Below, in pieces: positions 5,894-63,166 of a DNA stretch of 64,000 bases (its first letter is position 1; each line of letters begins with the position of its first letter). The notes beneath the pieces are model-generated. The model was given only the letters and a program-made list of their open reading frames with translations. It did not search any database and was not told the origin of the DNA. A program made the position numbers and the translations under genes. The DNA comes from Ascidiella aspersa (Eukaryota), in NCBI GenBank assembly GCA_963924565.1, contig OZ004615.1, positions 15,562,001 to 15,626,000 of the forward strand, read 5' to 3'.

Positions 5894-8800
5894 TTAAAGT
5901 GCAGTTGATTTAGTAGTGGAGTTCATCGTTGCAATAGAATTTGTGACGTGAGAATGTCTTCTGAATGCTATCGAGGATAATCGTTTTCTAGACTTTAAAA
6001 CACAGGTTCTCAACTTCTTAAAAACCACCTGTGGCAAGCTGCTGTAAATCAACGGATTCAGGGAGCTGTTGATTGGCAAAAGAAGAATGGCAGAAATGGC
6101 GTAAGACATGGGCGATAAAATAGCACCACCCATGCTGAGAAACGTCATGATACAGATTGGAAGCCAGCAGCACAAATCAGTAGCGATTAGTAGCGTGACT
6201 TTACGCTGCATCGCTTTAGTTTGCTTGCTTTTCTTTGTGAGGGATTTAGCCTCTTGCACAATTTCACTTCGCCGCTGTGAGATCCAGTAAATTGCCCCGT
6301 ATGCGCACGCAATATACAACAATGCGACGAAGTTGAACGTGATAATAACTGACGACATGGCATTAACACTGTCACTGGCTTCGATGCGATATAGCCTTGG
6401 AATGCACACGCTACTGCTACTGTAATAACCATAGGAATTGACAGAAGTTGGTACTGACGAGCCAAATTTGCCAAGGTAGCTTGTCAAATCAAACCAGTTG
6501 GAATTCCACAAGTCGATTTTGGGTTGTGACTTGTTGGTGATGACGGAAAGCCGCCCGGCAAAAGTTTGTAACTCCGTCAACACTACAGTATCAGTAGGAA
6601 AATAGGGACTTGGGCGAATCTGAATTTTCGATACCATTGAACTGGACAGAGCTGGTATAAAAGGAAGGACTGACACAGCGAAGGAAACAAGCCACATGGT
6701 AACAATCCACATAACGGCAATTCTCAGCCGAAAATTTCGCGATGACATCGGGTTAAAGACGCTGAACAATCGGTAAGATGTAATGCATACTAGCGTAAGA
6801 ACGGAAGTCTCGGAAGAGAGAACTGTCAAAACACCAATAATATCACATAGATTACTTGATCTCCAAGCTTTGTCGCGAATGCAGTACTCACCGCTAAACT
6901 GAACCGCTTTAATGCCAATTATCAACAAGGCGACGCCCATGATAAAATCCGAAACGGCGAGGTTCAGGATTAGGACACGGTTTATCAAACCCAATCGCTG
7001 ACGGTTCTGCGCAGTTGTACGTTTGCGCAGATACACGCAGGTTTGAACGAAAACCGCCAGGTTTCCCAGCAAAGCGAGGACAGCCATAAACCAAACTAGG
7101 ATCTCCAGTGCGCGCAACTTTATCATTTGGGTGTTGGAAGCCAGGGCATCGTTTTGCAAATACTCGGGAGGACATTCGTCTGAACCATCCTGACAATCTA
7201 CGACTCCGTCTTGAACCTTGTCACGTGGCACGAACAGTGGCTTCTTATCCGTGCAGTAAAAGTGCGTGCTTTTGGAGCAGTTTAGCTCGTCCTTCCAGTC
7301 ATCGCAGTCCGGTTTAAGATTGCACAATTTCTCTTTAGGAATGGCGGTTTTAGTTTTCACTGCAAATGCAACACTGGGGTAAGTATATTGACATGTCAAT
7401 TAAACAATATAAACAAAATATGTTATTGATACTCAAAGGTTATTTTTATGTTTTGTTATTAACTTCTCTACATTTAAGCTTTTCGTAGATTTACAAATAT
7501 AGGTCACTTTTTTACTTATTGTTCTAGCCTATACCCTATTATAACTGCCTTTCCTAAATAAATATAGAAAATATAACTATTTTGCGTGAATTGTCACATT
7601 ACAGTTTACCTCCAAACACGGTCTGAACTGGGCCTGCTTGACATTGGAATAGGTTACTGCAGTTCGTCTCATCAAATCCTTCATTGCACTCCACCACCCC
7701 GTTGCATATGTTGGATCCAAATATAAAATCAAATCTACCGGAGCATTTTCTTGATCTCAGATGGTATGTAAGTCCAACATCGAAAAGAGTATGTAAGTCC
7801 AACATCGAAAGATATTCTGGTGGTATGGGGGTCTGAAAAATAAATTATCTACGACTTAAGTATACGTTATTTGGATTTAGCCATTATTCACACGGGTAGG
7901 GTCGTAATTACTAAGGTCTCAACGTGTTTGGCCGTTCACCTCGTAAAGTTTGTATAAAACTGTCTTTATTCTTGTGTATGACATAAGTAAACTAACAGAA
8001 TATCTTTGCTTACTCTGTGGCGCTTTATCATGGATTTTGACTTTGAACCTTCTGTCGGCGTCACTGGTCCTTACTTTTATAAGTGTTTCTTTATCGCGAA
8101 TTCTATTTTTTTAAAACGTAGTTTAGTCATGAGGTGACCACGCGGTTTTACTGCGAAAAGATGGCCGTGGCTGACAAGCCTGCTTGCATAAACACGTGCC
8201 CTGACAGTTCTATTTGCTAAGTTCAAGGTAATTAAGAGCTATTCATAACAAGATTTCCGGTGCAACTAATTGTTATCTCACTGTGTCTAGGTATAATACT
8301 ACGGTATAATTAATATTCAAATAAAGAAAATTTGCTCTAATTAAAATAAATTGAAAGTAGATATTAATTAATATTCCTTCTATCCAAAAAACATAACCCG
8401 TTATTTTGCCTGTTTTAACTGCGGAAACACAAAAGTAGTACGCGCTTTGTACGATTTAGACTAGAGTTATGTTTTTCGTATATTTTCTTACACGTTTATC
8501 GAATCGGTTTACACTTACATCTTACATGCATCAGCGTCTCATTGCAACCTCGGTCTTAAAGATAAAACTTTAACCAAATAAACGAAATGTTGTGTTTTCA
8601 GTGTTACTTCTGTATGGCGTTACGTTTAGATATAACTTTGTGACGTGACGCTTTGACGTAATTTTGTGACATTGTTTTCATCTCTGAACAAATGTCATGG
8701 CAAAAAACAGAAAATCTTGGATATTCATAGATCTAGCTATGTAAAGGTTGGGGACTAGGTTACAACTTTCGATGTATTTTATGCGAACGGATCGTTCCCG

Positions 8801-11800
8801 TCCTAAATCCAATCCGAAATAGGTAAATATAATGAAGCGAAGCAATTTCACCCATCCTAATAAACTTCGCTATATGATTTCGTTACGTTTTATTTCTCTT
8901 TTTTAAATATAACTTTAACTGTAGAGATTTTTTTTATTTTTTTTATATTGGAGGGCATCACAAGTTATTGTAAAAATTAGAAAAAAGTCAGCATTTTGGA
9001 AAACACAGATATAAGGCATACGTGGTTCAAAGAAAAATTATAGCGGTTTTAGAAAACCTTATGCAAAATGTAAAATGCTATACGTACAGTTGTTATTGGA
9101 ATCTGGTCGCAAACAGCAGGTTTCTCGGAACAATTTGCCCGGTCGCTGCACTCGTCTTCAAACAATGCACATTCCACTTTTCCATCACACCTTGTTTCGA
9201 CGAAAAACAGAATTAGTCAAGAAGTCTAGGAAAACCATGCAATGAAATGTCTTCTTATTTGTAGCAATCTCAGCATGCGTGAATCCGGTTTGGAGGACGT
9301 GGCCCAAAACTTTATTTTTTTTAAGTGCAAACATTTTCGCACTTTGCGCGAATGTGCAATGTGTTTATGAAATGTTTTATTTATTTTTGTTAAAATCGTT
9401 TTTGCTAACGGCGTGGTGCGTCTCATCGCTATAAACGTATTGCCTTTACGCAAATAAATAACACCTCTGTAATGTTTTTTGTGTTGGAGTAACACCTCTA
9501 TAGTGTTCAACCTAGAACTTACAAAATAAACCAACTGTGTGGTGTTCTTCACGTTACTGTTTTAGGATGTAACGTTTCAATAATTTTGTTACGTCACGTT
9601 ATGACGTAACGTTGTAACGTCATAGTTGTGTGTTTTAAAGAAAGACGAGCCAACGCAACCTGTAAATGATTTGCCTCAGCGTCTAAGCTTCCGGTTCTTA
9701 CAAAGCGTATCCATTTAGAACAGGGGTCGACAACCTTTTTCTAGTCACGGGCCAAAACCAAACCCAAAATGATCTAGTTTAACATATAGTATCCAAACGT
9801 AAACAAACCGGAGGAGCAAAGATCATTATCAAAATTTACGCAGTTAAAATAGTAAAAAAGTATTTGAAATGGACTCATGTCTATAGTTTGGCAAAGAGGT
9901 GGCGGGCCGGATGAATTCCATTGGCGGGCCGGTTGCCGACCCCTGATTTCGAACGTGTAAAACGATATCTTTTTCGTTGTTTTTTACAATATGAAGACAT
10001 TATATTACTGGGTCGTGTTTAGACACGAACTAAAATTAATTCGCTTATTTCAATGAGTTCGTTGTATAAAACAAAAACTGGGTTACAACTTAAGCGGTGT
10101 ATGTTTTTGTAACCGTTCTGCCGCGCGCCTACACGGCCAATTTGAAAGCTTTTCGACCATTCCATTTATTAACTTATATTGTAAAAAATGCGAAAATCTT
10201 AATAAGCATATTATAGAAATGTATGTTTAAACTTAATTAAACATTTTCGCTTGTATTTATTCTAACGCCATAAATAAAGTTTTAAAAGCATTACCCTAAC
10301 TTAAAACATAGCTCCGTTATCCTAATGGTCCAATGTCAGATGGTAACGAACTACGGTAATACAATGGAACCGAAATTTTATAGCAGAGGATATTCAAAGC
10401 GGTAGATTGCAAATTTTGTCTTTGGTTTGTTATCATTAAATTTGGGTTAGGATTTCTAGTAACCTAATATGGTGGAACATATTTTTTAGTATTACAGAAT
10501 AAACAGTTAGTTTTGCTTGTGTTGACAAAGTTCCTGTCAGAAACAAACAGTTGAACGCATTATCAAAAAAATAAAAATAAGTGGGTGCGTCACAGAGACC
10601 AGCAAAGTTTTCCAAAGAGATGCAAAAGAAAACAGAAGAATCACTGCTTTACAATAGTGTCTGTGTAACGTTAAGGTGTCTTACCGTTTAGCGTTGATTG
10701 GCAATATAGCGTCCACCAGCGAACTGTCTAGAATTGATTTGGCAATATCGGAAAAATTCTTGGGAATGACATCACACAGAAAGTCAGATGCCAGCGTAGT
10801 ATTGGTTGTGAGAATATCCCCTCCGCAGCTTCTCTCGTCAACCTTTGAAATCGAACAGTCGACAATTCCATCGCAAACCTGCTTTCTAGAGATACAGGCT
10901 CCAGTTTGCGGACACTCAATCTCTCCTTGCATGCATTTCGGGCAAACGGCTGGAGTCGGCGTTTCGCCGTAGCAAACTTGGTCACAAAGGTCGCGCGAGC
11001 GATTGGCGGAAAGCTGGTCACGTGAGCAGAGACACTCGTCGCTAAGGTCTGGGCAGTCGAACACGCCGTCGCAAACTTGACGCATGGCGATCGTCATGTT
11101 GGATTGCAAGCATTTCGCGCAGTTAAAACTTCCGTTGCTGGAAAAAAGCAGGAAAAAGTCATTCGGGGTAATATGGTGCATCAAATCAAATCTTCATGGA
11201 GTCTGTTAAAACAATTGCTTCTACAAACATTAGTAGGATTATAATTTAATTGCTATTACTTTTTAGGCTTATTGTTCACTATTAGGTCGTTTGATAGGTC
11301 CGATGTACTTCATATTACTTATCCAGTCTTCAACATATTATACCTTCGTAATGTTTAGGTCTAGGACAGTGATCGCGAACCACTGTCCCGCGGGTCACTT
11401 TGTGACCCACCACAGAACTGCACTTTAACAAATCGGTGCAGAAAAGCAGACAACTAAAAGGATTTTGTTTATCGCTGTTAAACGCATCGGGTGGTGATCC
11501 TTTAAGGGAAACTATAAGACTAAACGTTCTAAAAATCCTGGTTAAACCAATAAACCATGCTGAAAAGCTTTCTGCTGACCTCTTGTAATCCCATAAAAAA
11601 TGCTGCAGCATTTGTTAACTATTTAGCTTCTTAATAATTGTGGGATTTTAAATATGGAAGTGATGGAAAAACCTTGAATTACCAACCCAGACAATAATAC
11701 TCAAAACGACGCAGCAGAGTTTCGCATAAAATTAGAAATTAATTAAATGTATGGCCCACTTGTGCATTTTGTTCAAAGGATTAAAGTCGTGTTGTGACCC

Positions 11801-14800
11801 GCGCGATGAAAGGGTTCGCCATCCCTGGTCTAGGAGATGCCGTAAGGCACATTGTATGTTGTAATACATTTCACATTGATTTATAATTGGTTCAGACAAG
11901 GATGAACATAGATAAGATGCAACGTAACTAACATTTATTTGTTAACATTAAGTTTGTCACTTGGAATTTTAGCGCATCGCAAGAGAATAACAGGATCAGG
12001 GTTATAATATCCCACTAGCCGACCAATTTGCATGTTTTTGCGGTTACTTTTCCGTTGCAAGGTAAATTGGCACAATCAATATTAAATCATCGGTTAAAAA
12101 CGCGACTTGGACAAATTTACACGAATAAGCAAAGCATAATAGATTATAGTGATTATGTGACTATGTGTTCACATCGCTTATTTCACAATAATTACTTTCC
12201 ACTTAACAGCACCGGGACAGACAGTCGTCCTTAAGTATGTAATTCCAAATTTAAGGAAACGGTAAATACGCTATTAAGCTTATGTAACACCGGGTATTTC
12301 GTCTAGTATTTAACTAATTGGATAGAGGCCTGTGAGATAAGAAAATATTTAATATGGTGAATAAACAATTTGTTAATTTAGAATAACGCACTAACGCAGT
12401 GCACATATAAAGAAATGTTAAACAAATAAAGAAATGTCTTTTTTACTTTATATCTTTCTTCATTTAAGACGTTTAGCATAGGTAGACAGCAACGTATTTT
12501 AACATTTGGTAAAGTCATGGCATGAAATCATAGAATAATAAAAAATGCTTTATTTATTTCGTTAATCTAAAAATATTTATGTGCTTCTATAATCTCTGAA
12601 GTCTCGCAAATGTATAAATGGCAAAATGTTATTTGAATGGAGATAAGTTATAAGTCAAATGCCGTTAAAAACAGTAAACTGCTACAAAAACTGTTGGTAT
12701 AAAACACTTAACGGTTCCCTAACAAAAGTGACTTGTCCTATACAACTTTTACTTTTCAGTGTAAAAAATGTTCGTTTTAAGCTATTGAAATCACCTCACT
12801 TAAATTCATATCATAACAGCTTTTCTTACGTGTAACAAAGATCGGAATCGTCGTTGCACATGGCATAATTGTCCAGTAGGGACCACTGAGGCAACACGCA
12901 ATAGTTGACATTCTCTGTGATGCCGAACACTGACTTGTAACACTTAAACCCAGGTAAGTTGCGGAAATCGTCAGCCCGACCCGGACAGTCCTGGTACTCA
13001 TCGCACGAGTACGTACGAAACACGCACGTTTTCGGATCCGTTTGACAGCGAAACATCCGCGGATCTGGACAGCTTTCGATCTCATCACTGCAATCGCCGC
13101 AGTGATCCATTCCATCACATAGTAGGTACCTTTTGCAATATTGCCGTTTTAACTATTCGAAGAGTAGACACAATCAGCTAAACATGACGATATACTTCAC
13201 AGAAAATTAATCAGTATTAGTGAATATAGAATGGTATGTTTGTAGCAATCACTTAAACTCATGATTACAACCAGTAATCATGTTTTTTTATTGAAAAAGA
13301 CTAAGTGGGTTATGTACTTGCCGAGTGACAAATATTGCAGGGCACTCCACTTTCGCGTTCTCATTTGAAGAATTAATTTGGTAAAACCTGAAGGCTACCA
13401 AATTTACACCCTATTTTTACTAGAGCACGCGTATAGCCTACTGGCCTTGCTCGAAATGTTTTTCGGGCAATCAGAAATATTACTTTCAAGATGCCAATTT
13501 TAATATACCAACCTGGGGATGCAGCGTTTTTTGTTGTGGCAGTGGAATTCTCCTTCCACGCACGTCTCGTTGTTAAGTGGCGCCACTTCATCGCTTCCAT
13601 CCTTGCAGTTTGTCATCTTGTTCCCCCTCCACGACCGCGGGATGCAGCGTCCTCCATTTGCGCATCGAAACTCGCGACTCGGATCGCACTGGAGGCTTCG
13701 CAGCTCGTCGGATCCGTCCGTACAGTCGCGGTATCCGTCCACGACCCGGTATCTTGCGATGCAGCGCTGATCAGCCTCACACCTGAACTCTGTGGCGTTA
13801 TTGCAGGTTGAGAGTGTCAACGCTTCGTCTCGTCCGTTGGCGCAGTCCTTCACTCCATCTGCTACCCACTCCCTTGGAATACACTGAAGGCTGCTGTTGT
13901 TGTTATTGTTTACTAGACTGGAGTTGTTTATCGAGAGGCAGGAAAATTCTGATGGAAGGCAAAATGGTAAGCTTTGCTTCTCGTCGCTGTCATCAATAAT
14001 CAGCTTCCCGTCGCAGTTCCGCACTACGTTCATTACCATCCAGCGTGGGATGCATATCTTGCTCAAAGCGCACGCGAACTCTGTCGTAAAAAGCTGTTTT
14101 TAGGTATATTTTAACTTGAAATGAGTTGTTTTCAGATTAAACAGTATTTGTCATTTACAAAATGCTTTTAGCGCAAATACTTAGTCGAATATTTTGGACT
14201 ATATGTTATGACTTAAGTTAGTAACAACAATTATATGCACATGTCACTGATTTTAAAAGAATGGATTTTATATTTCGGAAAAATGAATGGGCTTGGACTT
14301 ACGTCTATTGGGGTGATTTCAGAAATTGTCTTAAAATATTTTTCGAAACATTTTAGGTTAATAAAAAATCACTTGGCCTGGGACTTGACTTACCATTTTC
14401 CCTATTTACTTTACTTAAGTAATTGTGAATAACCTCAGCAGTTATATTAGGTATTATACTAAATTTGAGGTATATTTAAACAGTTTGATCTTCAATTACT
14501 GCCAAATATATTTAATGACAGTACAAAGACAAACAATTGGCACTTTATTTTTGTAGCATGTGAAAAATATGCGAATACCTCGTTTCGGATAATGTTCTTT
14601 ATCACGTTGTAAATCCTTACTTGTATTATTTAAATTACATGCGTAGTGGGTATTTAGTTTTAGTTTTCTACAACTTACCGTTTTCTCGACAAGGCAGCAC
14701 CAAACTTTCGTTTCCCCTGCAGCTCCTCTCAGTGTTGATCAGATATCTTGGGGTACATTTTAACGAGAAGCGGCAGCGAAATTCGTCGTCCGTACAGTTT

Positions 14801-17800
14801 AGGGGCGCTAAAGGACATACACGTGGTTGGTTGGTATTGTTCAATATTTACGATAAATTGTAAAAAAAAGTAAGCGAATTTAAATTGATAACGTTTGTTG
14901 TTAGGTCCTTTTTTAGCACGGGTATAGACCTTCAGTTTTAAAATATCTAGAAAAGAGTCCGTATAGCTTTTTATATTACGGTGAGTGTCGTCGCTGTCAT
15001 CTCTGCAGTTCCACTCGTAATTTCGAACCATTTCCCTGTCGATGCAGCCACCACTTGTTAAGCAACGGAAGTATCCATCTTCGGGTCGACAAAGCCTCTT
15101 CGAAGGATAGTTGTTACCTTTACAATATTTTTAGTTCGTTGAGTGGATTTCAACTAACAATAAGGTTATTTGGCAACTTTTCGCGAATCTAAAAATGAAA
15201 AAAGATGAAGCGGAGCATAGTGAGCTTAGCAGTTTAATTTTGTACCATAAACGTACACGTAAATTTAGTCTCACTGTAATTCTTCTACCTGGTGTAGTTC
15301 CAAATTTGGTTGGTTGCGAAAAGTTTGCCATACGGTTATTTGTATAACAACCTTGCTTAAAAAATATAAAAAAAGTAAAAGATAAAACATTGCACTTTAA
15401 ACCCAGAGGGCCAGATAGGTAGTAATGGTTTGCATTATACGAGTATTCAATGAGCAGAATTCAAAATATTCCGGCGAGGATTAAAAATCAAAATTCAATG
15501 GTAGCCTAAATGAATTTATTAAAGAAATCGAAAACGGGTAAACAACTTGAAACCCCCTGAAGGGTTTGTTCATTCGTCATAGGTATCCAGAACTTTTCAT
15601 AAAGGGCTAATGCTGCTAATGCGTGTTGAAATAACAAATTTTAGATCTTATTTCTCGGTATTACTGCCTTGATGGCTTTGTTATGTCATTCATAATCTTA
15701 ATTTCATGTATATTAGATTATTCTTCTTAAGATATTGTTACTTTGCGGGTATTGCTGTGTATTCCCTTTGCGAATATAGCATTTTAGATCATATGAAGTT
15801 TCAATAAAAATCTCGATTGCAATTATCTGCATTTTTCAGAAACATTGTTAATAACTGAAATTCCGCCTTTTAAACTAAAAGTCATCTTAATTAAAAATAA
15901 TGAAAGACGGGTGCCCCAAGTAGCGGTTCCAGGAGAGGAAGTCAAGTAACAAGTCTGTATTTTTTGTCTATTTTAACTACGTAAATGCAAAAGATTCTCA
16001 ACGAAAATATTATTTATTTTTGAAGTGTTCAAGACCATATTTTTACAAAAATAGATTTCGCCTAAAGGTGCCGTGCGTCTAACCGCACAATCCAAAATAA
16101 AAGTTCTGTCAATATAAACGATATATAAGGACTTTTTTTTTGCAGATAACATCTTTGTAAACGCACTGAGGTACCGGTACTCTTCTTTTAGGACAGGGGT
16201 TCTTAAAGTGGGGTCCATGGACCCCTTGGGGGTCCGTAAATATCCCCTTGGGGGTCCGTAAAAATAGTTTTAGGGGGTCCATGAAAGCCTGCTTGAAATA
16301 TTAGTGTAAATTTTAAAAGTAATCATTTTTTCAAAGAAAGCAGTAACTAAACGGTTTTGCACTGACTGTATTTAGACTTCATTTCACTTTCACATTTTTT
16401 AGGCCGCAATCAACAGATTTATGAAGTTCATTTGTATTGTGACGTCAATTTATGACGTCATTTTTTGAAAAATTTTGCCTATGGTGGTCCACGCGACGTC
16501 AAAAAAAATTTTAGGGGTCCGCGGTAAAAAAAGTTTAAGAACCCCTCTTTTAGGAGGTTGCTTCTCTATGGCGTCACGTTTAGATGTTACGTTGGAACAG
16601 CACGCTATGTTGTAACTTTGTGACGTAATTTCTATTTTTAATGACTCTTTCAAAAACCTGTATCCTACGATTGGGTAGCCCCATAGTATAGTTGCACCGG
16701 TGCATTTTTCCTGGCATGTTATGAAAAACAGCAGTTGGCTTTAAGCCTCAATGAGAAAACAGTGTGGGATTAAGTGTCTTTTCGTCTTTAAAATCACAGG
16801 TTTTGGGGGTAAACTACGTTCGGTAAATAGATATTTTATGTAATTTGCTGTTGTTCGCATTCCTCAGCATATAAACAGCGATTGCGTTTAACTTGCGTAT
16901 GTTATTTGATTCATATTGCGCCCAAAGGTTTTCGGTCGACCCTATAGGCCTACTTCCCTAAACTCTAAATTTCAATTAAATGTTACTACATTCAGTCTTA
17001 TTGCACCATATTGAATCCTGGTGACTAATTTGGGTGATTTCATGTCACCTTTCTCGTCATGGAATTACCAAAGAAGTTCGGTTTCTATTTGTTTGACTCT
17101 GTTATGTTGTTTAGTGCGCAAAAACGGAAAAGCAGTTTAGTTTCAACCTAAAAAATTATATGTCTCGTGTTGAAGCATTTTACGTTTTAAACATTATGTA
17201 TTTAAGACAATTCATGAGTTTAGAATTAGCTTTGGTAAACCTACGTAACTTTTTTTTACTAGCTTTCACGAAAGCCCACAATGGAAACAACGCATTGCTA
17301 TATGGAGTTCTGTATTAGTGTCTTGGCATCGTCAGTCACTTGTTTTGGCGTTTTATTTAACGCAAATAAGTATTTTTTTAGGAGGGGGGTAGGGGATTAT
17401 GTGCAAAACTCTTTGATATTTTTGACATACCAAAATAACAAAAAGCTAAACAAAAAGCCAAAACAAACGTAGCATATTGTCTTAATAGGAAATGGGGAAA
17501 TTGTAAATAACTACCACAAAAAGCACAGCAAATATCGCTCGATACATTTGTCAAAATCAGATAAACACAACCATCTGAAGAAAAATCCAAGTTCAAGCTG
17601 AACCTAATGTGATAAACCATATCATATAGCTACAATAAAGACATAATTAAAAAAAAAGTTGTTGGGTGTATTTTACAATGAATTTTTTATAAGTTTTTAG
17701 TTTTATAAGCGATTTTTGTGACGTTTTTTTTCGCAAACGATTTTGACTGACATAACGTGTCAATGTAGCAAAATTTGTACTTTTTTGGCCAAGTGGAAAA

Positions 17801-31949: not shown

Positions 31950-31987
<38 letters not shown>

Positions 31988-49127: not shown

Positions 49128-49336
49128 GTCTACAATACTAACTTATTTCATATCTGTTCGGATCTGCAGATTAAACACCTGTCCACATTTACAGTTACTA
49201 TGTATTTCTACAAAAATAAGCGCCTTGTTTGGCACTATTAAAAGGGTTATACTTTTACAGGTTGTTTTTTACTTACCCAATAACGCCACTAAAAATACGT
49301 TCGTAAAAACGACATTCGTCGCGTTACCATCTATAC

Positions 49337-50893: not shown

Positions 50894-53800
50894 ATGTTGT
50901 TACTCGCCCTATTTTCTTTGGTGGTCGTGAACTGTGTTAATACTGGTGAGTGCGATTTCCAGTTAAGTGGCTACAATGGGTTAAAACGAGTGTGATTGTA
51001 AATTTTATTACAAAGTATAGGAAACATTAAGGAGGACAAATCGAAAAAGGAATCGTAATGCTCGAATATTTTTCGAAGTACCCATGATGGTTTCCTTAGA
51101 TAAATTGGAGATTATTTGACAAACTTGTACCCAGGTTACAGCAAGCCATCGAAGATATATTGTCGGCCGGATGACGGCTACTTTCGTTGCAAGAAAGGCG
51201 CGTGTTTAGATCGGGATAACGTTCGGAACTACTGGAAGGACTGTGATAACGACGAATCTCACCGTAAGGCAATTGCTTTTTTCGGATTTTAATAAGCTGA
51301 TTTTGAATTTGTCACTAATTATTCGCGCATTTTGTATATAGTGCTATTATCTAACAGTTACTCTTATCTGATGTCAAAAGTTTACTTCGGCACTATCAAA
51401 AATTACATAAGTTCAGCAAAATATTTTGGGGCCTCTATATGCACTAGACCAGGGATGGCGAACCACTGTCCCGCGGGTCACGAAGTGACCCACCACAGAT
51501 TTTTAATGACCCACTTGCCTCTCTAGAAATACCGAAATGTTATCAATCATTTTCATCAAAGGATAAATGCAAAAAAACAGTTCTTCGTTAAATAGCACTA
51601 TACTGTTTAAATTTGGGCTGCCCATCTGTGGGTCGTGCAAAACTGTTTGAGGGTGACGATTATGCCTACATTAACTGCACTTCAACAAATGCGTACAGAA
51701 AAGCAGACAACTGAAAGCATTTAATTTATCGCTGTAAAACGTAACGCGATCCTGGGAAATTAAGAGTTCGCAGACAAAAAATTCTAAAAACCCTGGTTGA
51801 ACCAATAAACAATGCTGAAAAACTTTTTGCTCAACTCCTGTAATCTCATAAAAAATGCTACTGCATTAGAATCCGAATTTGGAAATCATACAAAAATTAC
51901 CAACCCAGACAATGATACTTAAAACGACGCAGCAACAAATTTCGCAGCAAATTAGCAAATAATTAAATAAATGACCCATTTGAGCATTTTGTAAGGATTA
52001 AGGTCGTGTTTGTGACCCGCGCGATAAAAAGGTTCGCCATCCCTGCAGTAGACTAACGATGTCCAACCTGCGTCGATGAATAATTGTGCGGCCGTTAACA
52101 CGTATTTTAATAAGCATGTGTCGGCGGCCGTGGCCGTGTCTGCTTAAATGGTTGATATACTAAATGCAGATTATATTGTTTTACGACTTTAGGGAGTGCA
52201 GTTAAATCAGTGAGCTAAGCTCTTTCGCTGCATTCTTAGTGAACAGATTTCTTATGTGCGCTAAAATAACTTGATTTCATTGATTGATTGATGCACAAAG
52301 AAATCAGTGTATGACAGGGGTAGGCAACCTTCGGCCCGCTGACCGGATCGGCTCGCCAATGCAATTTATCCGGCCCACGGCCTCTTTGGACAAACTATAG
52401 ACACGAGTCCATTACAAATACCTTTTGACTATTTTAACTAGGCAAGGACGTAACAATTTTTGAATGATATTTGTTCGTCCGGTTCGTTTACGTTTTGAGA
52501 CTGTCTTTTGAACTAGATCAGCGATTTTTTACCGTTGAACAGTGGAAGGCTGACAAATGGGTTGCGGACAAACGGAAACCGTATTCAAAAATATCGGGCA
52601 TATATTTTTAATTTGTTTTTAATTTTTGGCAATGTAATAAAAACTTGCACGAAATTTAAAACAAATGCCATTATAGAAAAAAAAATGCTGAATTTGGAAC
52701 TTTGAGGCAGGTTTGAAATTAGACGGGGTTTTTATGTAATAGGCAAGCCAGACATTCGTCTACCATTGCTGGTCATTAGATTGGCTGAGAGCATTAGAGC
52801 AGGGGTGGATCCTGGCCATGCCCCTAAAAATATCATTTTGACAAATTTCAATGCAAACGCTATTTTTTCGCGCTTTGCGCGAACTTCTACTATCTGTCTT
52901 TATTGTATTTTAGTCCCTTTGAACTAAATTCGCGCGATCAATCTGCTTTAAGGTTCCATATTTTACCACGAGTTCGTCAGACAAAACGTCAAGATTAATT
53001 ATGCTATGACGTTACGATTTGACAACTTTTTGAGTCATCCCTGAAAACATTTAACTTGCGGCCGTGAGGAAAATAAGACTGTCAATGCGGCCGTCAAGAG
53101 CTGAAAGGTTGGACATCCCTGCAGTAGACCTAAACCTATCATATTTATTTTTGGTTTAGATCAAGCTCTCCTTTTACGTGTTAGAGAATCTTGCTAATAT
53201 AAATAGACGTGTAACGTTAACCGAAAGTTATGGTATGATCCGTTTCATTGCGCTAATAACGCAAAGTTTGCAAATAATATCTTCAAATGTAGGTCATCGG
53301 TAGTTTTGCCGAATTCAGACTTTTCGAAAATGTATCTTATTGGCGAGCAAGTGTGGGTTATACGTAACAGCTCTGATAAAAGCATAATAATACTTGTTGC
53401 TTCAGCGCCCTTGAACTGTACGGACGACGAATTCCGTTGCCGCTTTTCGTTGAAATGCATTCCAAGATATGTGCTCAACACTAAACGGAGCTGCAGGGTA
53501 AATGAAAGTTTGGTGCTGCCTTGTCGAGAAAAAGGTAAATATATACATACTATACATGTAAAATTAAGAGGCATATGATATCACTTTTATGATACACTAT
53601 AGAGCAGGGGTGGGCAAATGTATTCAATGAAAGAGCCATTTCAAAAAATACAAGTAACAGAGAGCCTCAAAGTTATTTCAATTTACAAAAACGGTAAATA
53701 ATGTAAGTTCAGCATTAATAACAGAATTGTAATACTGCATAACAAAACGGTAGTAATTAACACAATAATAATGACGGTAATAATAAAAAAACACGCACAA

Positions 53801-56800
53801 TATTTATCAATATCAGTCATTTGTTTGATTTGCTAATCTATAAAACCTTAGCAATGATGAAATTGCGTTAACTTGCTGTTAACTAACTCTTCGGATTCTA
53901 CGTCTTGTGTACGTCATAAACGAAATGCCTAAATCAGTGGTTCCCAACCTTTTTGTACCCGTAACCCCTTTTTGGAGACGGGGATGCGAACATTTTTTGC
54001 ACAATGTGCGCCAAAATGTGCAAAAATTGTGCGCAAAAATGTGCACGCCAAAATGTGCAAAAAATGTGCGCACATTTTTAAGTAGCTTCAAAAATGTGCG
54101 CACTTTTCTTAAACAATGTGCGCACATTTAGAACTGCCTTCAAAAATGTGCGCACTTTTTTAACAATGTGCGCACATTTTAAACTGCCTTCAAAAATGTG
54201 CGCACTTTTTTTAACAATGTGCGCACATTTTAAACTGGCTTCAAAAAGGTGCGCACTTTTTTAGGTTAGAGTTAGTTAGGGTTACTCTTAGAGTACAGAG
54301 TTTAGCTAACTCTAATTCTAACTCTAACCCTAACCCTAACCCTAACCCTAACCCTAACTCTAACAACTCTAACTGTAACTCTAACTCTAACTCTAACTAT
54401 ACTTCGAATCCTGACTGTAACTAAAACTCTTACTTTAACTTAAAAATGGCGCACATTGTGAAAAAAAGTGCGCACATTTTTTAAGGCAGTTCAAAATGTG
54501 CGCACATTTTTTGCACATTTTGTCGTGCACATTTTTGCGCACATTGTGCAAAATAACGCCACGTCCCCTGTTGCCTTTTTGATGCTTTCAAATATTCGTG
54601 GAGCCCCTTTTTCTGGTGATCACTGAAGTAAGTCTTAAAACGCGTGATTGCGTTTTGAAAATGCTAGACCAGGGGTCCGCAACCCAAAATGTTACACAAC
54701 TGTGTATCAGGCGGGCGTCAGATTTTTGCAGCTAAAATCGTGTTCAATGACATTTAAGGCGGCAGTAAAGGCACAAAGCGCAAATAAAATGCGCTTGTTT
54801 GGCTCAAAATTCGAATCCATACGTAGTCATCCATATTACTAATGAATAGTATAATGAAACCACCTTAAGGAACCCCGATAACTTTGAATAGTTAATCTAG
54901 TTGTGTGTTTGTTAACGTTTGTAGGTGGGAAGAACTCATGGCGACCGAAGCGAGCGCGATTTTTTTCGGTATACCGGGCATTTCTTTTAAATTTTTTGCA
55001 AGTTTTTATTTAGACTTGAAAAAAAGGTTAAAAAATATATGTCCAATATTTTTTAATACGTTTTCCGTTTGTCCGCGACGCAATTCACGGCGCAATGGTA
55101 AAGAAGCGCTGATATAGTTAAAGACAGCATGATAACGGAAACAAACCGTAACAAGAACGATCATTCGCGCGAAGCGCGAAAATTTTTGCCCTTATGTAGT
55201 TAAAATAGTCAAATAGTATTTGAAATGGACTCGTGTCTAGTTTGTCAAAGAGGCTGCGTGCCGGATAAATTACATTGACGGGCCGTAGGTTGCCGACCCC
55301 TGTGCTAGACGCATGACATTTTTGCGACTGATATCATAAACTAAAATCAAGTACATGTGAGCTAAAATAATGCTGCCTCCCAATTCACAATCTATTTGTG
55401 TTAGATCACAATGGAAGTGTTACGTCACACTCAACGCGATTTACAACATATTACAATGTGATTTTATCACTTACCAAGATTGTGATTAAACATGCTTCCC
55501 AGCGTTTAAAAGGGTATATTTAGAAATTTTTGCAGACCCCCTGAAAACCTCTTGCGGACCCCCAGGGGTTCGTGGACCCCCGGTTAAGAACCACTGGCCT
55601 AAATAAAGAAAGGAAAAAGAGAGAAACGTTCATAAACAGTATCTCGGTAGCCTTTATTAAACAGTATCTCGGTAGCCTTTGCTTTTTGGAATTTTACGAT
55701 TCGACTAGAAGAGCCACAAAAAACATGCCGGCGAGCCGCATGTGGGCCCACCCCAGCTATAGAGGCAAATGTTTATTTCTACAGACCTTAAACTTTGTCC
55801 TGAACGCAGAGTACCCAAATCTACCCATACTAACAGTAAAACCTTTTTAAAAGTTTTTTTATGAAGCTTGCTTGAGCTCACCAATGTAACATATATGTGT
55901 TTCATTTGATATATGTCATACGGTGGGATCAGTGTTACTAAATAAAATGAGGCTATTCATCTTCACAAGTTGGTAAAATCTGTTACATTTTACGACAAAC
56001 CGGTTCTTTTCATGATATAAAAATGGTTTGGCGTAAAAAAAGTAAAAATCGATCAGTTTTGTTTATTTTTCCTATCCATTAAACGTTTAGAGAGAATAGA
56101 TTTACTCAAGTGGTAAAATTGTGGTGATGGTTTAACACAGTGCTCAGACCAAAGACGGTATACACGAGGCCATGCCATAATCATCCAAAAACTATCATGT
56201 TTGCCTGTTTTTACAATGTAAATGCAAAACAAATAGAGTCTTATATGGGTATTATATGTTTACACGATTTGGGAGAACCAGCGGCACTGTGGGCATTCTG
56301 AATTTGCCTAATATTTTTGTCAAACTTTACGAATGCATTTTTTTCGGTCTTTTAAATACTCAGTGTCCAAAAGGCCTATAGTTTAATATAAAAGTTTACC
56401 AACTTAGACCAAACTAACAATAAAGATAAGCACGTTCCTTATAGTTCTTTTGATTCACTGTTATGTGTAAGCTTTGATTGCCCAACAGACGACAAACTAC
56501 AAATTCTAAGCACCTAATTTGTCTATAGTTTGTTCAATTTTGTTTGCGCTATCTCGTGAAACGCACTACATGATTTTTCGCGTCTGGAGCAACTTATACG
56601 ATGTTTATTGCAGAACTATACAGCTGTTGGGTAAATGGCTCGTGCGCAAAAATGTGCACGCCAAAATGTGCAAACAATGTGCGCAAAAATGTGCACGCCA
56701 AAATGTGCAAAAAATGTGCGCACATTTTTAAGTAGCTTCAAAAATGTGCGCACTTTTTTTAACAATGTGCGCACATTTTGAACTGCCTTCAAAAATGTGC

Positions 56801-59800
56801 GCACTTTTTTTAACAATGTGCGCACATTTTGAACTGCCTTCAAAAATGTGCGCACTTTTTTTAACAACGTGCGCACATTTTAAACTGGCTTCAAAAAGAT
56901 GCGCACTTTTTTTAAGAATGTGCGCACATTTTAAACTGGCTTCAAAAATGTGCGCACTTTTTTAGGTTAGAGTTAGTTAGGGTTACTCTTAGAGTACAGA
57001 GTTTAGCCAACTCTAACTCTAACCCTAACCCTAACTCTAACTCTAACAACTCTAACTGTAACTGTAACTCTAACTATACTTCTAATCCTGACTGTAACTA
57101 AAACTCTTACTCTCACTTAAAAATGGCGCACATTGTGAAAAAAAGTGTGCACATTTTTTAAGGCAGTTCAAAATGTGCGCACATTTTTTGCACATTTTGG
57201 CGTGCACATTCATGCACGAGTGATTATTTGAATCATGCACGAGTGATTATTTGTTTAATCATGCACGAGTGATTATTTGTTTCGAGACTTTTATTGAAAT
57301 CAACAAACCATCATCCGCTAAATCGCCAAGGGCGGCGAGAGTTTGTTGTAAATTCAAGTTGTGAATTTTTCAGTTTGAGTATTGTTATTGCTTCAGACTT
57401 ATTTAATTTGTTTAAAATTATTGTTGAATCGGTAAATAATAATATTTTGAACAGTAAACGCTTGTATAGTTAACAGATGTTACATGCGGTATAAGTCGAA
57501 AATTCTCAAACTGTTTTTCTGTGGTGTGTTTATGCCGGATATCAGACGATGTGCAATAAAGACAAAGTATATGTGCAACAATTTATGTAGGTAAAGCATA
57601 AACCTAAAACAAAAACTTTTTTCACCCGAAAGAGTTCGCGTGCGCTTTGAGCAAGATATGCATCCCACGCTGGATGGTAATGAACGGAGTCCGGAATTGC
57701 GACGGGATGCTGATTAAAGACGGCAGCGACGAGAAGCAAAGCTTGCCATTCTGTCTTCAGTCAGAATTTTCCTGCCTCTCGACAAGCAACACCAGTCTAG
57801 TAAACAATAACAACAGCAGCAGTCTCCAGTGTATTCCAAGGGAGTGGGTAGCAGATGGAGTGAAGGACTGCGCCAACGGACGAGACGAAGCGTTGACACT
57901 CTCCACCTGCAATAACGCCACAGAGTTTAGGTGTGAGGCTGATCAGCGCTGCATCGCAAGGTACCGGGTCGTGGACGGATACCGCGACTGTACGGACGGA
58001 TCCGACGAGCTGCGAAGCCTCCAGTGCGATCCGAGTCGCGAGTTTCGATGCGCAAATGGAGGACGCTGCATCCCGCGCTCGTGGAGGAGGAACAAGATGA
58101 TAAACTGCAAGGATGGAAGCGATGAAGTGGCGCCACCTAGCAACGAGACGTGCGTCGAAGGAGAATTCCACTGCCACAACAAAAAACGCTGCATTCCCAG
58201 GTTGGCAAATAGTAAAATTGGCATCTTGAAAGTAATATTCCTGTCTGCCCGAAAACAATTCGAGCAATGCCAGTAGGCTATACGTGTGCTCTTCACTAAC
58301 AATACGTGTGATTTTAAGTTAAAATTAGTAGCAACAAGGTTGTACACAATCCATTTAGTTGTTTTGATTAAAAGGTACCTACTATGCGATGGAATGGATC
58401 ACTGTGGCGATTGCAGTGATGAGATCGAAAGCTGTCCAGAGCCGCGGATGTTTCGCTGTCAAACAGATCCGAAAACGTGCGTGTTTCGTACGTACTCATG
58501 CGATGAGTACCAGGACTGTCCGGGTCGGGCCGACGACTTCCGGAGCTTACCCGGGTTTAAGTGTTACAAGTCAGTCTTCGGCATCACGAATAGTGTGAAC
58601 TATTGCGTGTTGCCTCAGTGGTCGCTACAGGACAATTATGCCATGTGCAACGACAAGTCGGACCAATGTTATAGGTAAAGATGTGATTATTTCCTTATAC
58701 ACAAAAACATTTCCGTTTGGTATATTTGATGTGCTATGGAAAAGCCAATACTTTTTTTAATTATGTTGTTGTTTATATTTATACCAAGCAATACCGGTTG
58801 AGATTCTTAACTTTAGTAAAAGTCAAATAAAACCTATTTATTCTATAAAACGAGAATATAGTAAATACCAAAAATGTGCAACTGTATAGCCGGAAGGGGG
58901 ACTAACCGAAAAAAATAATAAAGATTTTCATACAAGTAAGGGCAATCTAGAAAACAATAGGCTGTGCAAAGTTCGAACACACTATATATAGGCTATATAG
59001 TACCATAAGTCGGGAAAGAATCATAGAATCAGTGTCTGTGGCATTTTGTTAGTACACGAAGGGGATTGCTATATAAAGTTACTGAAACATTTATATACAA
59101 GTATGTATGAGTGTATCAATAATTAAGTTTACAATAAAATTGTTATCTTACCAATGTTTGTAGTGACAATATGTTTTAACCAACGATTTACGGACTTGTT
59201 TTGATACCCTTTAACTTTTTATAAATTCACTGCTAAATTTCAGCAACGGAAGCTTTAACTGCGCGAAATGCTTGCAATCCAACATGACGATCGCCAAGCG
59301 TCAGGTTTGCGACGGCGTGTTCGACTGTCCAGATCTTAGCGACGAGTGTCTCTGCTCACGTGACCAGCTTTCCGCCAATCGCTCGCGCGACCTTTGCGAC
59401 CAAGTTTGCTACGGCGAAACGCCGACTCCAGCCGTTTGCGCGAAATGCGTGGAAGGAGAGATTGAGTGTCCGCAAACGGGAGCCTGCATCTCTAGAAAGC
59501 AGGTTTGCGATGGGATCGTCGACTGTTCTATTTCAAAGTTGGACGAGAACAACTGTGGTGGTGAAGTCACCACATTGGATGCAACTAGGGATTCTGATTT
59601 TCGTTGCGACGTCTTCCCTGACGATTTTATGGACAACGCTAAACGGATTCTAAATAGCAACTTGGTTGATGTGATGTTTCCCGTCAACGCAAAACGGTAA
59701 GCTTCTAAAACCTTTTTCTGTACGATAACAAAAATTACAAATATTCTTTTCAAGTGTTTTTTAAATGAAACGCCCTCCGTGGACCATGAAAATATTTCGC

Positions 59801-62800
59801 CTTTAAATTATTTTACAAAACAAATTATAAAACAGTTACATTTGCATCTGAGACTAATATTGTCACGCAAACATAATAGAGAGTGTTGATGTTTTACTTT
59901 CCTGAGGCAAAGGTCCTTAAAATAGTAAAGCTGAAAATATTTTTTCCTGAATTCAGATGTGACGGAAAAGTGGAGTGTGCTTTGTTTGAGGACGAATGTA
60001 GTGACCGGGCAAACTGTTCTCAAAAGCCGACTGTTTGCGATCAAATCCCCATCATAGACGTAAGTAAGACTAGAATTCACCATTCAACGATTTAGATATT
60101 TGAGTATCTACACTTGCCTTTTTCATATATTTTTTTATTTATCCACGTTAAACCCGGGTCGATAGGTATAACAAAACTATTTTTGACTCAAAAAGCTTTC
60201 CACCGAGGCTTAACTCGTGGTTCAAGAGTGTAACAAAGGAACATTAATGCTCATCAAATTTTCCTGTATATTTATATGTGCATGGTAATGGACGTGAGTT
60301 TTTTTGGGGGGGATGAATCTTTGGCTTTGTAGTATGATGATTTAGCATGTTTCGGGCGAATCTTTTTCGTACAAGTGACGTTTACTCTTTTTTTGTTATT
60401 GTGAACATAACATCGAGAAAATAACTATCCTATAAAAGTTATATTGTTTGACAACCTGAACTAGATATCGATAAAATGTGCGTTTTTGTAAAAAAAAATT
60501 ATGCACATATTTCACCAAAGGCTAGTACGATCGTGCTTTCAGAATCTTTCAAATTTGAAATTTCCGGCAAGTTTTTTGTTGTCTATGTTACACTGAGTAT
60601 GTCATAATGGAAATCACGAAAAGTTAATATATTTCATTCAATTGTTTTAAGATTTGCCCAAATAAGTTTGGGCCATATTGTTGTCCTATTATACATAACA
60701 CCTCTTCAAGATAAGAATTTAACAGGCAAATGGTCTGTATGTTTTTTGCGCAAACTGTTGGTGTTAATTATGCACCTGTTGGGTCAACGGCGCACAAAAC
60801 CTATTTTCTTTGATTTTCTATTACAAAATGTCATAATTTTAGGTATCGTGCGAATTATTATGTTAATCATATTTGCCCGAAGAGTCACGGCTCCTTTCAA
60901 ATTAAATGTTTTCTAAATTTAAAACAAATAAATAAAAACCAAAACGCAGCAATTATCTCATTGGATATATTAAGTCTTTACTTCAGTTGCACATTTGCGC
61001 AATAGTTCTTCTAGCAAAGAGAACTTTCTTTTTAAGGTTACTTGTATTGGCACGTAACGTTACTACTTAACTTTGTGTCATTATTTCTAAATGTTTTCAT
61101 GCAACTAAAACATAACCTTGTGTTACCAAATGACATTGAAGTTACAGTTCCTTCAAATTTTCTGTTTTTGCGTTTTGCCTGATATTGACTTTAAACTGTT
61201 GATAATTTGAAAACCTTTGATCCGAAATAGTGGTAGCCTACAAATTGCGTAAGAAATATCTGGAATGGTGCCCATATATATAGGAAGTCTGCACCAATAG
61301 AAATAAAACGTGTACTAAACGTTAACATTTATTTAATTTCTTACTCAAGACAACAATTCCAGCGGGATACCACCGGGCGATTAATTACGACTTCATACTT
61401 ACAACGAGAAAATGCTCCCGTAAAGTGGATTTTGTTTTCGGCTCAAGTATTTGCAACGGAATGTTGGATTGCACTGAGGGCTGGGATGAGATGGACTGTG
61501 ATAACCTCTTTGAATGCAAGGCTGGAGCTGTGCAGACAATTTTTGGAGGTTTGTAACACAATTTAAAGTATGGACGTGTAAAGCAACGTCTAAATCAAAC
61601 TATAGTGGGGGAACTGTAGTCATTCTTGCAGTTAAGTCGCAAGATTAGTGAATCAAGATAATACAAACAATTTAAAACAGAAAAAATAAAACTATACACA
61701 AATCCATTGTTGATTTTGCAGCAAAGCAAGTCACCGCCATACCGGAGCAGAATAAGTGCAACAAGATACCGGACTGCGATGACTGGAGAGACGAGCTAAA
61801 CTGCTCCAAAAGCACGCACTTTTACTGCACGGATAAGAAGCCATTGTTCGTTCCACGTGATAAGGTTCAAGACGGAGTCGTAGATTGTGAGGATGGTTCA
61901 GACGAATGTCCTCCCGAGTATTTACAAAACGATGCCCTGGCTTCCAACACTCAAATGATAAAGTTGCGCGCACTGGAGATCCTTGTTTGGTTTATGGCTG
62001 TCCTCGCTTTGCTGGGAAACCTGGCGGTTATCGTTCAAACCTGCGTGTATCTGCGCAAACGTACAACTGCACAGAACCGCCAGCGATTAGGTTTGATAAA
62101 CCGTGTCTTAATCCTAAACCTCGCCGTTTCGGATTTTATCATGGGCATTGCCTTGTTGATAATTAGCATTAAGGCGGTTCAGTTTAGCGGTGAGTACTGC
62201 ATTCGCGACAAAGCTTGGAGATCAAGTAATTTATGTGATATCATTGGCGTTTTGACAGTTCTCTCCTCAGAGACCTCCGTCCTTACGTTAGTATGCATTA
62301 CATCTTATCGATTGTTCAGCGTCTTTAACCCGATCACATCGCGAAGTGTTCGGCTGAGAATTGCCGTTATGTGGATTGTTACCATATGGCTTGTTTCCGT
62401 CGCTGTGTCAGTCCTTCCTTTTATACCAGCTCTGTCCAGTTCAATGGTATGGAAAATTCAGATTCGCCCAAGTCCCTATTTTTCTAATGACACGATAGTG
62501 TTGTCGGAATTACAAAATTTTGCCGGGCGTCTTTCTATCATCAGCAACAAGTTGCAACCCCATAATGACTTGTGGAATTCCAATTGGTTTGAATTGACAA
62601 GCTACCTTGGCGAATTTGGCTCGTCAGTACCAACTTCTGTCAGTTCCTATGGTTATTACAGTAGCAGTAGTGTGTGCATTCCAAGGCTATATCGCATCGA
62701 AACCAGTGACAGCGTTAATGCCATGTCGTCAGTTATTATCACGTTCAATTTCGTCGCATTGCTGTATATTGCGTGCGCATACGGGGCAATTTACTGGATC

Positions 62801-63166
62801 TCACAACGGCGTAAAGGTATTGTGCAAGGGGCTAAAGCCCTCACAAAGAAAAACAAGCAAACTAAAACGATGCAGCGTAAAGTCACGATATTAATCGCTA
62901 CTGACTTGTGCTGCTGGCTTCCAATCTGCATCATGACATTTCTCAGCATGGGTGGTGCTATTTTATCGCCCATGACTTATGCCATTTCTGCCATTCTCCT
63001 TTTGCCAATCAACAGCTCCCTGAATCCACTGATTTATACGAACTTAGTGCAAACGGTTTTTAAGCAAATTAGAACGTGTTTTTTTAAAGCTAAACAACGG
63101 TTTCCAAATTTTAAACCAAACACTCACGCAGCGTTTGATACGCCAAGCAAAACCACTGCTGTTTAA
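50894..63166 (+). CDS. Gene D: divergently oriented multi-LDLa GPCR paralog, ~1125 aa; join(50894..50945,51135..51263,53406..53534,57633..58200,58375..58674,59244..59696,59957..60059,61350..61548,61722..63166)
   Basis: Signal peptide MLLLALFSLVVVNCVNTG|gtgagt with an in-frame upstream stop. Same intron positions and phases as A/B; 3378 nt open frame. Distinct C-tail ending TTAV. Confidence 0.88.
51450..52045. mobile_element. hAT-type MITE (gene D intron 2)
   Basis: TIRs cagggatggcgaacc/ggttcgccatccctg; TSD cactagac/cagtagac. Confidence 0.88.
52054..53121. mobile_element. Second hAT-type MITE adjacent to the previous one
   Basis: Right TIR ggttggacatccctg, decayed left TIR taacgatgtccaacc; cagtagac on both sides. 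Confidence 0.75.
53605..55756. mobile_element. Nested hAT MITE stack (outer 53605-55756, middle 53935-55596, inner 54670-55302)
   Basis: Perfect TSDs ctatagag, gcctaaat and tgctagac respectively, each with matching cag...ctg/cag TIRs. Confidence 0.88.
53980..54568. repeat. Foldback-like element: 51-bp tandem units (aatgtgcgcacatt palindromes), central (CCCTAA/CTCTAA)n, inverted arms
   Basis: The left-arm subrepeats are reverse-complemented in the right arm; ends ggggatgcg / cacgtcccc. Confidence 0.85.
56640..57210. repeat. Second copy of the foldback-like 51-bp-unit element
   Basis: Same units and telomere-like core as 53980-54568, with more 51-bp units; followed by 3 copies of catgcacgagtgattatttg (57211-57280). 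Confidence 0.85.

Follow-up and report, generated by a model that had tools for sequence, protein, structure and literature searches.

How a receptor of the relaxin-receptor type might work without a leucine-rich repeat (LRR) ectodomain is the question raised by a 64,000-nt stretch of the Ascidiella aspersa genome (GenBank assembly GCA_963924565.1, contig OZ004615.1, positions 15,562,001–15,626,000 of the forward strand; hereafter referred to as the window). This window holds a cluster of paralogous receptor genes, labeled g1 to g4. A first-pass annotation, made from the letters alone, had counted four paralogous genes. Three of these (g1, g2 and g4) are complete, but g3 is interrupted by an assembly gap, and possesses only exons 1 and 7–9, with the gap where exons 2–6 would lie. 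I propose that g1–g4 encode class-A receptors of the LGR clade, nearest to the relaxin receptor RXFP1, in which the LRR ectodomain is absent and an array of LDLa modules is joined directly to the hinge and the seven-transmembrane (7TM) domain. I further propose that this 7TM domain would work like that of RXFP1, and put the probability of identity and mechanism jointly at about 0.55. All four genes belong to the LDLRR-GPCRs of ascidians, a family already reported from Ciona in 2008, and the architecture as such is not new.

The three intact genes each possess nine exons without internal stops, and encode proteins of 1144 (g1, from a 3435-nt coding sequence), 1131 (g2) and 1125 (g4) amino acids. 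All their introns are GT-AG, and the phases close the frame exactly. In all three, a signal peptide is followed by ∼15 LDLa-like modules, a short hinge and a rhodopsin-class 7TM domain. Four long open frames of ∼500 amino acids each, at 5894–7399, 22681–24186 and 41700–43205 on the minus strand and 61844–63166 on the plus strand, encode the same product. They mark the four paralogous terminal exons (5894–7359, 22681–24146 and 41700–43165, minus strand; 61722–63166, plus strand), every one of which is a single open frame with two LDLa-like modules, the linker and the entire 7TM domain. In g1 this exon carries the end of module 14, module 15, the hinge, the complete 7TM domain, the C-terminal tail and the stop codon, and Pfam recognizes both 7tm_1 (E 9e-20) and Ldl_recept_a (E 1e-10) in the one frame. 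The last module and TM1 thus share an exon, as had been claimed.

The splice models were obtained by reading the junctions in the sequence and by collinearity with a Phallusia mammillata orthologue (P0024, CAB3263497.1, 859 amino acids), which spans the signal peptide, the LDLa array and the region up to TM3. Eight exon blocks of g1, g2 and g4 align collinearly with it, and together they account for its whole length. This protein stops after TM3, and carries the automatic name ‘LRP2-like’. It is a truncated LDLRR-GPCR and not an LRP, and this name is misleading; the clean nine-exon models correct it in this related species.

The 7TM domain places these receptors near RXFP1. When the terminal-exon 7TM was compared to all PDB sequences, RXFP1 was the best match (E 2e-23), followed by a C. 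elegans LGR, TSHR, LHCGR and FSHR, and other generic class-A receptors began only at about 1e-9; the RXFP/LGR placement is a ranking against solved structures. A model of the exon-9 product, generated with AlphaFold2 (AF2) from a 34-sequence alignment, reached a predicted template modeling score (pTM) of 0.76 and a mean predicted local distance difference test (pLDDT) of 78.7. The first 30-odd Foldseek matches to this model are all LGR-type receptors. All 34 members share residues N1.50, D2.50, C3.25, R3.50, W6.48, P6.50, D6.44, N7.49 and P7.50 without exception, and Y7.53 is almost as constant; the invariant positions include R196, D137, W398, P400, D394, N434 and P435. Signaling through G-proteins would be plausible, since R3.50, D2.50, the CWxP motif, D6.44 and NPxxY show little or no variation.

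In RXFP1, a segment of extracellular loop 2 (ECL2) occupies the orthosteric pocket, and ECL2 residues F564, P565 and L566 are required for signaling together with hinge residues L402 and L403; RXFP1 without its LRRs has a high basal activity, of about 70% (Erlandson et al.). The corresponding regions are readily found in the ascidian receptors. The g1 hinge, 20 amino acids from the last module to TM1 (7115–7174, minus strand), gives a 10-residue ungapped HMMER alignment to RXFP1 DGISSLENLL (residues 394–403), confirming the likeness to the RXFP hinge that had been seen in this linker. In the alignment M78 and I79 fall on L402 and L403, while L-A-S falls on I396, S397 and S398, with a one-residue numbering offset. 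The motif [F/L]-S-[S/N]-x-x-E-[M/L]-I is kept in the 34 members; the first position of its terminal [ML]-I pair is retained in all of them, and the isoleucine in 32. One version of the 20 residues is found in g1, g3 and g4, and a different version in g2.

The second of these regions, ECL2, spans ∼99 amino acids in g1 (6362–6658, minus strand), where alignments to RXFP1 and the AF2 model delineate a family-specific insertion and then an RXFP1-like core (6389–6430). This core, GYY....VC[M/I/L]P[R/K][L/I/F], corresponds to RXFP1 NYYGTNGVCFPL, and its residues G310, Y311, Y312, V317, C318 and P320 are invariant or nearly invariant among the 34 members. The insertion, of 65–86 amino acids between TM4 and the GYY core, is present in 34 of 34 aligned members, where RXFP1 has about 8 residues. 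It is predicted by AF2 as a folded hairpin and two helices (pLDDT 74–89), and no description of it was found in the literature searched. As judged by alignment, the self-activation residues of the RXFP1 hinge and ECL2 are conserved in the family, with the exception of L566.

The ectodomain is more irregular. By cysteine pattern g1 possesses 15 LDLa-like modules, three of which are split by introns (exons 4/5, 6/7 and 8/9), and to this extent the reported number of about 15 holds. Many are degenerate, however. With Pfam and database searches of g1–g4 run exon by exon, 11 Ldl_recept_a stretches are found in g1 at E ≤ 1 (in exons 2, 4, 5, 6, 8 and 9), 8 of them in exons above the gathering cut-off. 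Modules 1 and 3–6 lack the fourth cysteine, module 2 lacks the acidic cluster, module 4 carries an Asn/Ser-rich insert, and roughly one module in three has an acidic DxSDE cluster. For the last module, THFYC...DGVVDCQDGSDEC, the best match among solved structures is to the LDLa-like calcium-binding domains of glucosidase II beta. The membrane-proximal part of the ectodomain (hereafter the stalk), from GFKC...LPQ...SDLC onward, is conserved family-wide, including in Ciona and Clavelina proteins, whereas the N-terminal arrays vary.

No LRR was found in any exon, which agrees with the first-pass annotation. An LRR consensus regular expression had no match in any coding-strand open segment of at least 24 amino acids of g1, g2 and g4. 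Pfam (E ≤ 1) run on all 110 minus-strand open segments of that minimal length between 7400 and 17000 returned Ldl_recept_a in 5 segments and no LRR family. A single LRRNT match (E 0.19, 11.8 bits against a 25.8-bit cut-off), the only LRR-type signal seen, was rejected as being at chance level. The Phallusia, Ciona and Clavelina relatives show just Ldl_recept_a and 7tm_1 in Pfam, without LRR, and the 17 single-frame paralogues of the same genome that were scanned show these two families and nothing else. The Pfam content expected for the cluster, Ldl_recept_a with 7tm_1 and no LRR, was thus recovered exon by exon. Furthermore, the position at which LGRs usually carry their LRRs leaves no room for an LRR exon, since the last module, the hinge and TM1 are encoded together in one exon. 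Neither an EGF domain, nor a YWTD propeller, nor a single-pass anchor was found by Pfam, whose matches are to Ldl_recept_a, 7tm_1 and related LDLa-like models.

Such an architecture has been reported previously, as the caution that it might not be wholly new had anticipated. According to Kamesh, Aradhyam & Manoj (2008; BMC Evol Biol 8:129, PMC2396169), the Ciona LDLRR-GPCR cluster consists of 14 receptors with 1–10 tandem LDL-A repeats and no LRR, and a further 14 LGR-like Ciona sequences have no recognizable N-terminal domains. The same paper describes TM regions resembling those of the INSL3/relaxin receptors, calls for the de-orphanization of these orphans, and places their expressed sequence tag (EST) matches mostly in blood cells and haemocytes. 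In the literature searched, no later functional work was found, nor was a ligand, coupling or phenotype reported for any LDLRR-GPCR member; searches on ascidian GRL101, haemocyte transcripts and tunicate Ldl_recept_a/7tm_1 expansions gave nothing beyond Kamesh et al.

Protein searches with the terminal exon agree with this identity. They returned the Phallusia mammillata protein (62% identical within the overlap), Ciona ‘GRL101-like’ proteins (35–40%), Clavelina proteins, and many unnamed proteins carrying only PF00057 and PF00001. The Ciona ‘GRL101-like’ proteins P0013, P0020 and P0023 are homologous to the terminal exon (E 1e-74 to 1e-92), and in a quick tree with SH-aLRT (Shimodaira–Hasegawa-like approximate likelihood ratio test) support, rooted at its midpoint, P0013 and P0020 are placed on the same side, within a starred 20-row group. 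The Ascidiella genes therefore combine what defines the LDLRR-GPCRs: a relaxin-receptor/LGR-like 7TM domain, N-terminal LDL-A repeats, no LRR, and homology to the Ciona proteins.

Both sets of genes are orphans with tandem LDL-A repeats on an INSL3/relaxin-receptor-like 7TM domain, without LRRs, and both belong to an ascidian lineage-specific expansion. In contrast to the 1–10 repeats and 14 (+14) genes given there for Ciona, ∼15 modules per gene, at least 143 loci and open frames of up to 1907 amino acids are found here; the conserved hinge, the ECL2 core and the ECL2 insertion do not appear in the available text of that description. What goes beyond 2008 is the family size, and the finding that a hinge and an ECL2 core of the RXFP1 type occur together with an ECL2 insertion peculiar to the family.

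Other receptors resemble g1–g4 in part. Human RXFP1 and RXFP2 share TDxxCWxPI in TM6, LPINSxLNP in TM7, the ECL2 core YY....VC-hydrophobic-P, the two hydrophobic hinge residues before TM1 and the presence of LDLa in the ectodomain, and RXFP1 is the closest solved 7TM by sequence. However, in RXFP1 a single LDLa module is accompanied by a 32-residue linker and by an LRR domain that serves both to bind relaxin and to autoinhibit the receptor, while g1–g4 have 15 modules and no LRR, an ECL2 that is ∼70 residues longer, and S-Y-R in place of DRY. The activation residues of the type C LGR hinge and ECL2 are thus present, but the LRRs between LDLa and 7TM are not. Lymnaea stagnalis GRL101, the source of the database names for ascidian proteins, likewise carries many LDLa modules on an LGR-type 7TM domain; according to Kamesh et al. 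(2008), LRRs separate its LDLa array from the 7TM domain, whereas g1–g4 have the array without them. The LDL receptor/LRP family and the G2B domain of glucosidase II beta use the same module type, but the EGF-precursor region with its YWTD propeller and the single-pass anchor that characterize LDL receptor/LRP proteins are absent from g1–g4.

The family is large in this genome. Six-frame searches of the 308.6-Mb assembly with two queries gave 297 and 336 first-look candidates, of which the best 101 in each search are all very strong. The union of both holds at least 143 distinct 7TM loci on nine contigs, in tandem arrays of up to 16 genes. This gives a lower bound for the copy count that had been called for, and together with the RXFP1 ranking it upholds the description of a lineage-expanded orphan family with an RXFP/LGR-type 7TM domain on an LDLa array. 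The family is about five times the size reported in Ciona, and comparable to chemoreceptor families. Arrays are located at C6:7.61–7.75 Mb (16 loci), C2:35.36–35.86 Mb (9 loci) and C8:5.25–5.34 Mb (9 loci). Among the matches listed, g1–g4 form their own clade, and the next relatives are 45% identical. In most other members a single frame runs without interruption over ∼860–1900 amino acids (up to 1907), with up to 223 cysteines.

Within the cluster, pairwise ratios of nonsynonymous to synonymous substitution (dN/dS) are 0.19–0.49 for the ectodomain and 0.30–0.44 for the 7TM domain, and the remaining exons of g3 give 0.24–0.31 against g1. Both parts of the paralogues are under purifying selection, and these pairwise ratios show no sign of diversifying selection in the cluster. 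One high value, in exon 8 of g1 against g2 (ω 4.6), was discounted, as it stems from a single synonymous difference beside an indel. Synonymous divergence (dS) between g4 and the other copies is a mosaic, saturated in exons 2, 7 and 8 but 0.15–0.33 in exons 4, 5 and 9. This mosaic (g4, 51135–63166, against g1, 5894–15117, and g2, 22681–35141) suggests gene conversion between old tandem or inverted duplicates. The introns of g1, g2 and g3 are 75–92% identical. The cluster appears to be a young tandem array, with copies partly homogenized by gene conversion.

The state of g3 (41700–46445, minus strand) depends on the assembly. Exons 1 (46391–46445), 7 (44725–44827), 8 (43419–43617) and 9 (41700–43165) are all intact, and exons 2–6 have left no trace in the assembled sequence. 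The only run of N in the window (45357–45556) lies between exons 1 and 7, in non-coding sequence, and no exon or reading frame touches it. The sequence on its low-coordinate side corresponds to g1 intron 6, followed by a dispersed repeat, and that on its high-coordinate side to g1 intron 1. It follows that either the gap conceals the ∼7.5 kb that in g1 carries exons 2–6, or this segment has been deleted. Joining exon 1 directly to exon 7 would break the frame (phase 1 joined to phase 2). Because the missing exons would fall exactly at the gap, the completeness of g3 cannot be judged from this assembly.

Evidence for expression comes from one RNA-seq run of the same species, of which ∼6% was sampled at 90% likeness over 5601 letters of g4 (exons 4–9). 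Reads fall mainly on exons 5, 8 and 9, with a depth of up to 4.6x in exon 9. The first mate lies on the minus strand over the g4 exons, which is the sense orientation if the library is a standard stranded one. Thus g4 or close copies of it are weakly expressed. Reads are also found in the g4 intron at 60405–60965, on repeats.

How, then, could such a receptor be gated? In the mechanism that I favor, the GYY....VC[M/I/L]P segment of ECL2 and the M-I pair of the hinge would self-activate the helix bundle, as in RXFP1. A self-activating ECL2 and hinge without the LRR brake implies a receptor that is either constitutively active or restrained in some other manner. The restraint exerted by the RXFP1 LRRs may be replaced by the conserved cysteine-module stalk, by the folded ECL2 insertion, or by both. 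The variable N-terminal LDLa modules would bind ligand in a calcium-dependent manner, and thereby release this restraint; by analogy with LDL-receptor relatives, the ligand would probably be a protein or lipoprotein with basic patches. The family keeps the self-activation core shown by the 2022–23 RXFP1 structure, without the LRR domain that restrains this core, and this makes it possible to test directly by what means an LGR-type 7TM domain is gated when LRRs are missing, and whether LDLa arrays can serve as ligand sensors in signaling.

A number of observations weigh against this proposal. Throughout the family the DRY motif lacks its acidic residue (S/A/T-Y/F-R), the position of RXFP1 L566 is occupied by R or K, and many modules lack the canonical calcium-cage residues. 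The LDLa part of the AF2 model has a pLDDT of 44–68, and the docking of the last module on the 7TM domain is unreadable. The idea of autoinhibition is carried over, by analogy, from one human receptor, and the family is an orphan one. Finally, the RNA support is thin (38 reads, of which 11 match g4 at 99% identity or better), and as no junction reads exceeded the threshold, the splice model rests on the sequence and the orthologue.

Several other explanations have to be considered alongside this one. That g1–g4 are ordinary GRL101/RXFP-type LGRs, with LRR exons missed in introns or upstream of exon 1 (for example as many 24-residue single-repeat exons), has some basis in that vertebrate LGR genes have one LRR per small exon, that Pfam is weak on single repeats, and that no RNA junction reads were seen here. 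Yet the regular expression and Pfam were both negative, the intron phases close the frame without extra exons, a single exon contains the last module, the hinge and TM1, and no LRR is found in the Phallusia orthologue, the Ciona and Clavelina relatives or the 17 single-frame paralogues, with Kamesh et al. reporting the same for Ciona; I consider this explanation highly improbable. Low expression (a depth of at most 4.6x in exon 9, from the 6% sample), together with the absence of five g3 exons and the frameshift between its exons 1 and 7, could instead indicate decaying or non-functional duplicates with little or no expression, and a truncated pseudogene in the case of g3. It is nonetheless improbable that these are relics, given that the frames of g1, g2 and g4 are open over 3.4 kb, with intact splice sites and dN/dS well below 1. 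In g3 the remaining exons are intact and constrained, and the missing part coincides with an assembly gap, as is common in tandem duplicates. Only slightly better placed, and still unlikely, is a role as endocytic or scavenger receptors akin to the LDL-receptor relatives, where the 7TM domain would be an anchor and not a signaling unit. The ‘LRP2-like’ name of the Phallusia orthologue and the absent DRY acidic residue would fit this role, but EGF and YWTD domains and a single-pass anchor were not found, and the invariance of the class-A microswitches and of the RXFP1 activation core across deeply diverged members is hard to square with a passive anchor.

A different kind of alternative bears on biological role, and could hold together with the RXFP1-like mechanism proposed above: the family could be a diversified recognition repertoire (chemosensory, immune or allorecognition), in which the LDLa arrays are variable ligand surfaces, as in olfactory or innate-immune expansions. 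The number of loci, at least 143 among about 300 candidates and in many tandem arrays, speaks for this, as does the wide variation in length of the N-terminal arrays; so do the Ciona ESTs, mainly from blood cells and haemocytes (Kamesh et al.), which are the only published hint on expression found. On the other hand the cluster shows no diversifying selection, the ectodomain ratios staying at 0.19–0.49, and gene conversion homogenizes its exons. The chemosensory or self/non-self role put forward by the first-pass annotation thus finds no support here (dN/dS 0.2–0.5), and a recognition repertoire is doubtful, if clearly less so than the three alternatives above. It is with equal reserve that I suggest its fuller version, in which a relaxin-receptor scaffold gave rise to a repertoire of several hundred genes, with the ECL2/hinge module kept, the LRR brake replaced by the stalk and an ECL2 lid, and the variable LDLa arrays acting as diversified sensors, for example on blood cells. 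If true, the family would amount to a deletion of the LRRs made by nature, against which the RXFP1 autoinhibition model could be judged, and to a new kind of large family of recognition receptors in a chordate.

The individual exons of g1, all on the minus strand, are as follows from the N-terminus. Exon 1 (18339–18393) holds the start codon and a signal-peptide-like segment, and ends at a GTAAGT donor in phase 1. It is conserved in g2 (37224–37278) and g3 (46391–46445): the 19-residue start is the same in g1 and g2 and has one substitution in g3, whereas in g4 (50894–50945) it has diverged yet remains hydrophobic. Exon 2 (14980–15117) encodes module 1, with four cysteines and an acidic DDSDD; it is matched by Ldl_recept_a (E 2e-4), is collinear with residues 22–58 of P0024, and is flanked by AG/GT splice sites. 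The degenerate module 2, without acidic cluster, forms exon 3 (14679–14807), which has no Pfam match but is 70% identical to residues 70–109 of P0024. Modules 3–6 and the first half of module 7 lie in exon 4 (13513–14080), with the Asn/Ser-rich insert, four Ldl_recept_a stretches (E 1e-27) and AG/GT sites in phase 1 at entry and phase 2 at exit. Exon 5 (12830–13129) completes module 7 and adds modules 8–9; the stalk begins here (GFKC..LPQW..SDLC), by the consensus over 17 other family members. Exon 6 (10685–11137) carries modules 10–11 and the first half of module 12, with two Ldl_recept_a stretches (E 7e-9), and exon 7 (9088–9190) the second half of module 12, according to the gene model and collinearity with P0024. 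Module 13 and the first half of module 14 are found in exon 8 (7610–7832), where Ldl_recept_a is weak (E 0.037).

Complete copies with the same nine exons are found in g2 (22681–37278, minus strand; 37224–37278, 35001–35141, 34668–34796, 32265–32832, 31601–31900, 29645–30079, 27537–27639, 24397–24595 and 22681–24146, all with AG/GT sites) and g4 (50894–63166, plus strand; 50894–50945, 51135–51263, 53406–53534, 57633–58200, 58375–58674, 59244–59696, 59957–60059, 61350–61548 and 61722–63166). Two small differences in length distinguish the copies. Exon 8 of g1 has 223 nt against 199 nt in the others, owing to a 24-nt in-frame tandem duplication not present in g2–g4, and exon 6 of g2 (29645–30079) carries an 18-nt in-frame deletion; both are located in linker-like stretches between modules.

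The genes g1, g2 and g3 are in tandem on the minus strand, with a spacing of ∼19 kb, while g3 and g4 are head to head (46445–50894), their first coding exons 4.4 kb apart; this interval may be a shared divergent promoter region. No open reading frame of note was found in positions 1–5800, and an Rfam scan of the window gave no match. Short dispersed repeats occur in both orientations in introns and between genes (9770–9936, 38607–38708, 49848–50022, 52349–52520 and 55192–55302). A further repeat match pairs 45120–45350 with 53592–53836, and one repeat copy adjoins the assembly gap.

A few observations on the read data remain to be mentioned. In intron 7 of g4, reads at 60584–60617 and 60899–60932 match over ∼33 nt and run into unrelated sequence on both sides. 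These segments are common to transcripts from elsewhere, and are probably a repeat fragment. Apparent joints in two other runs (X1 and X2) were rejected as splicing: both runs also carry introns, pointing to differences between paralogues or alleles. A third run (X3), labeled as another organism (B), contains 27% of the sampled g4 words (57600–63200), mostly from exons and with some intron pieces, which suggests a closely related species or a mislabeled sample.

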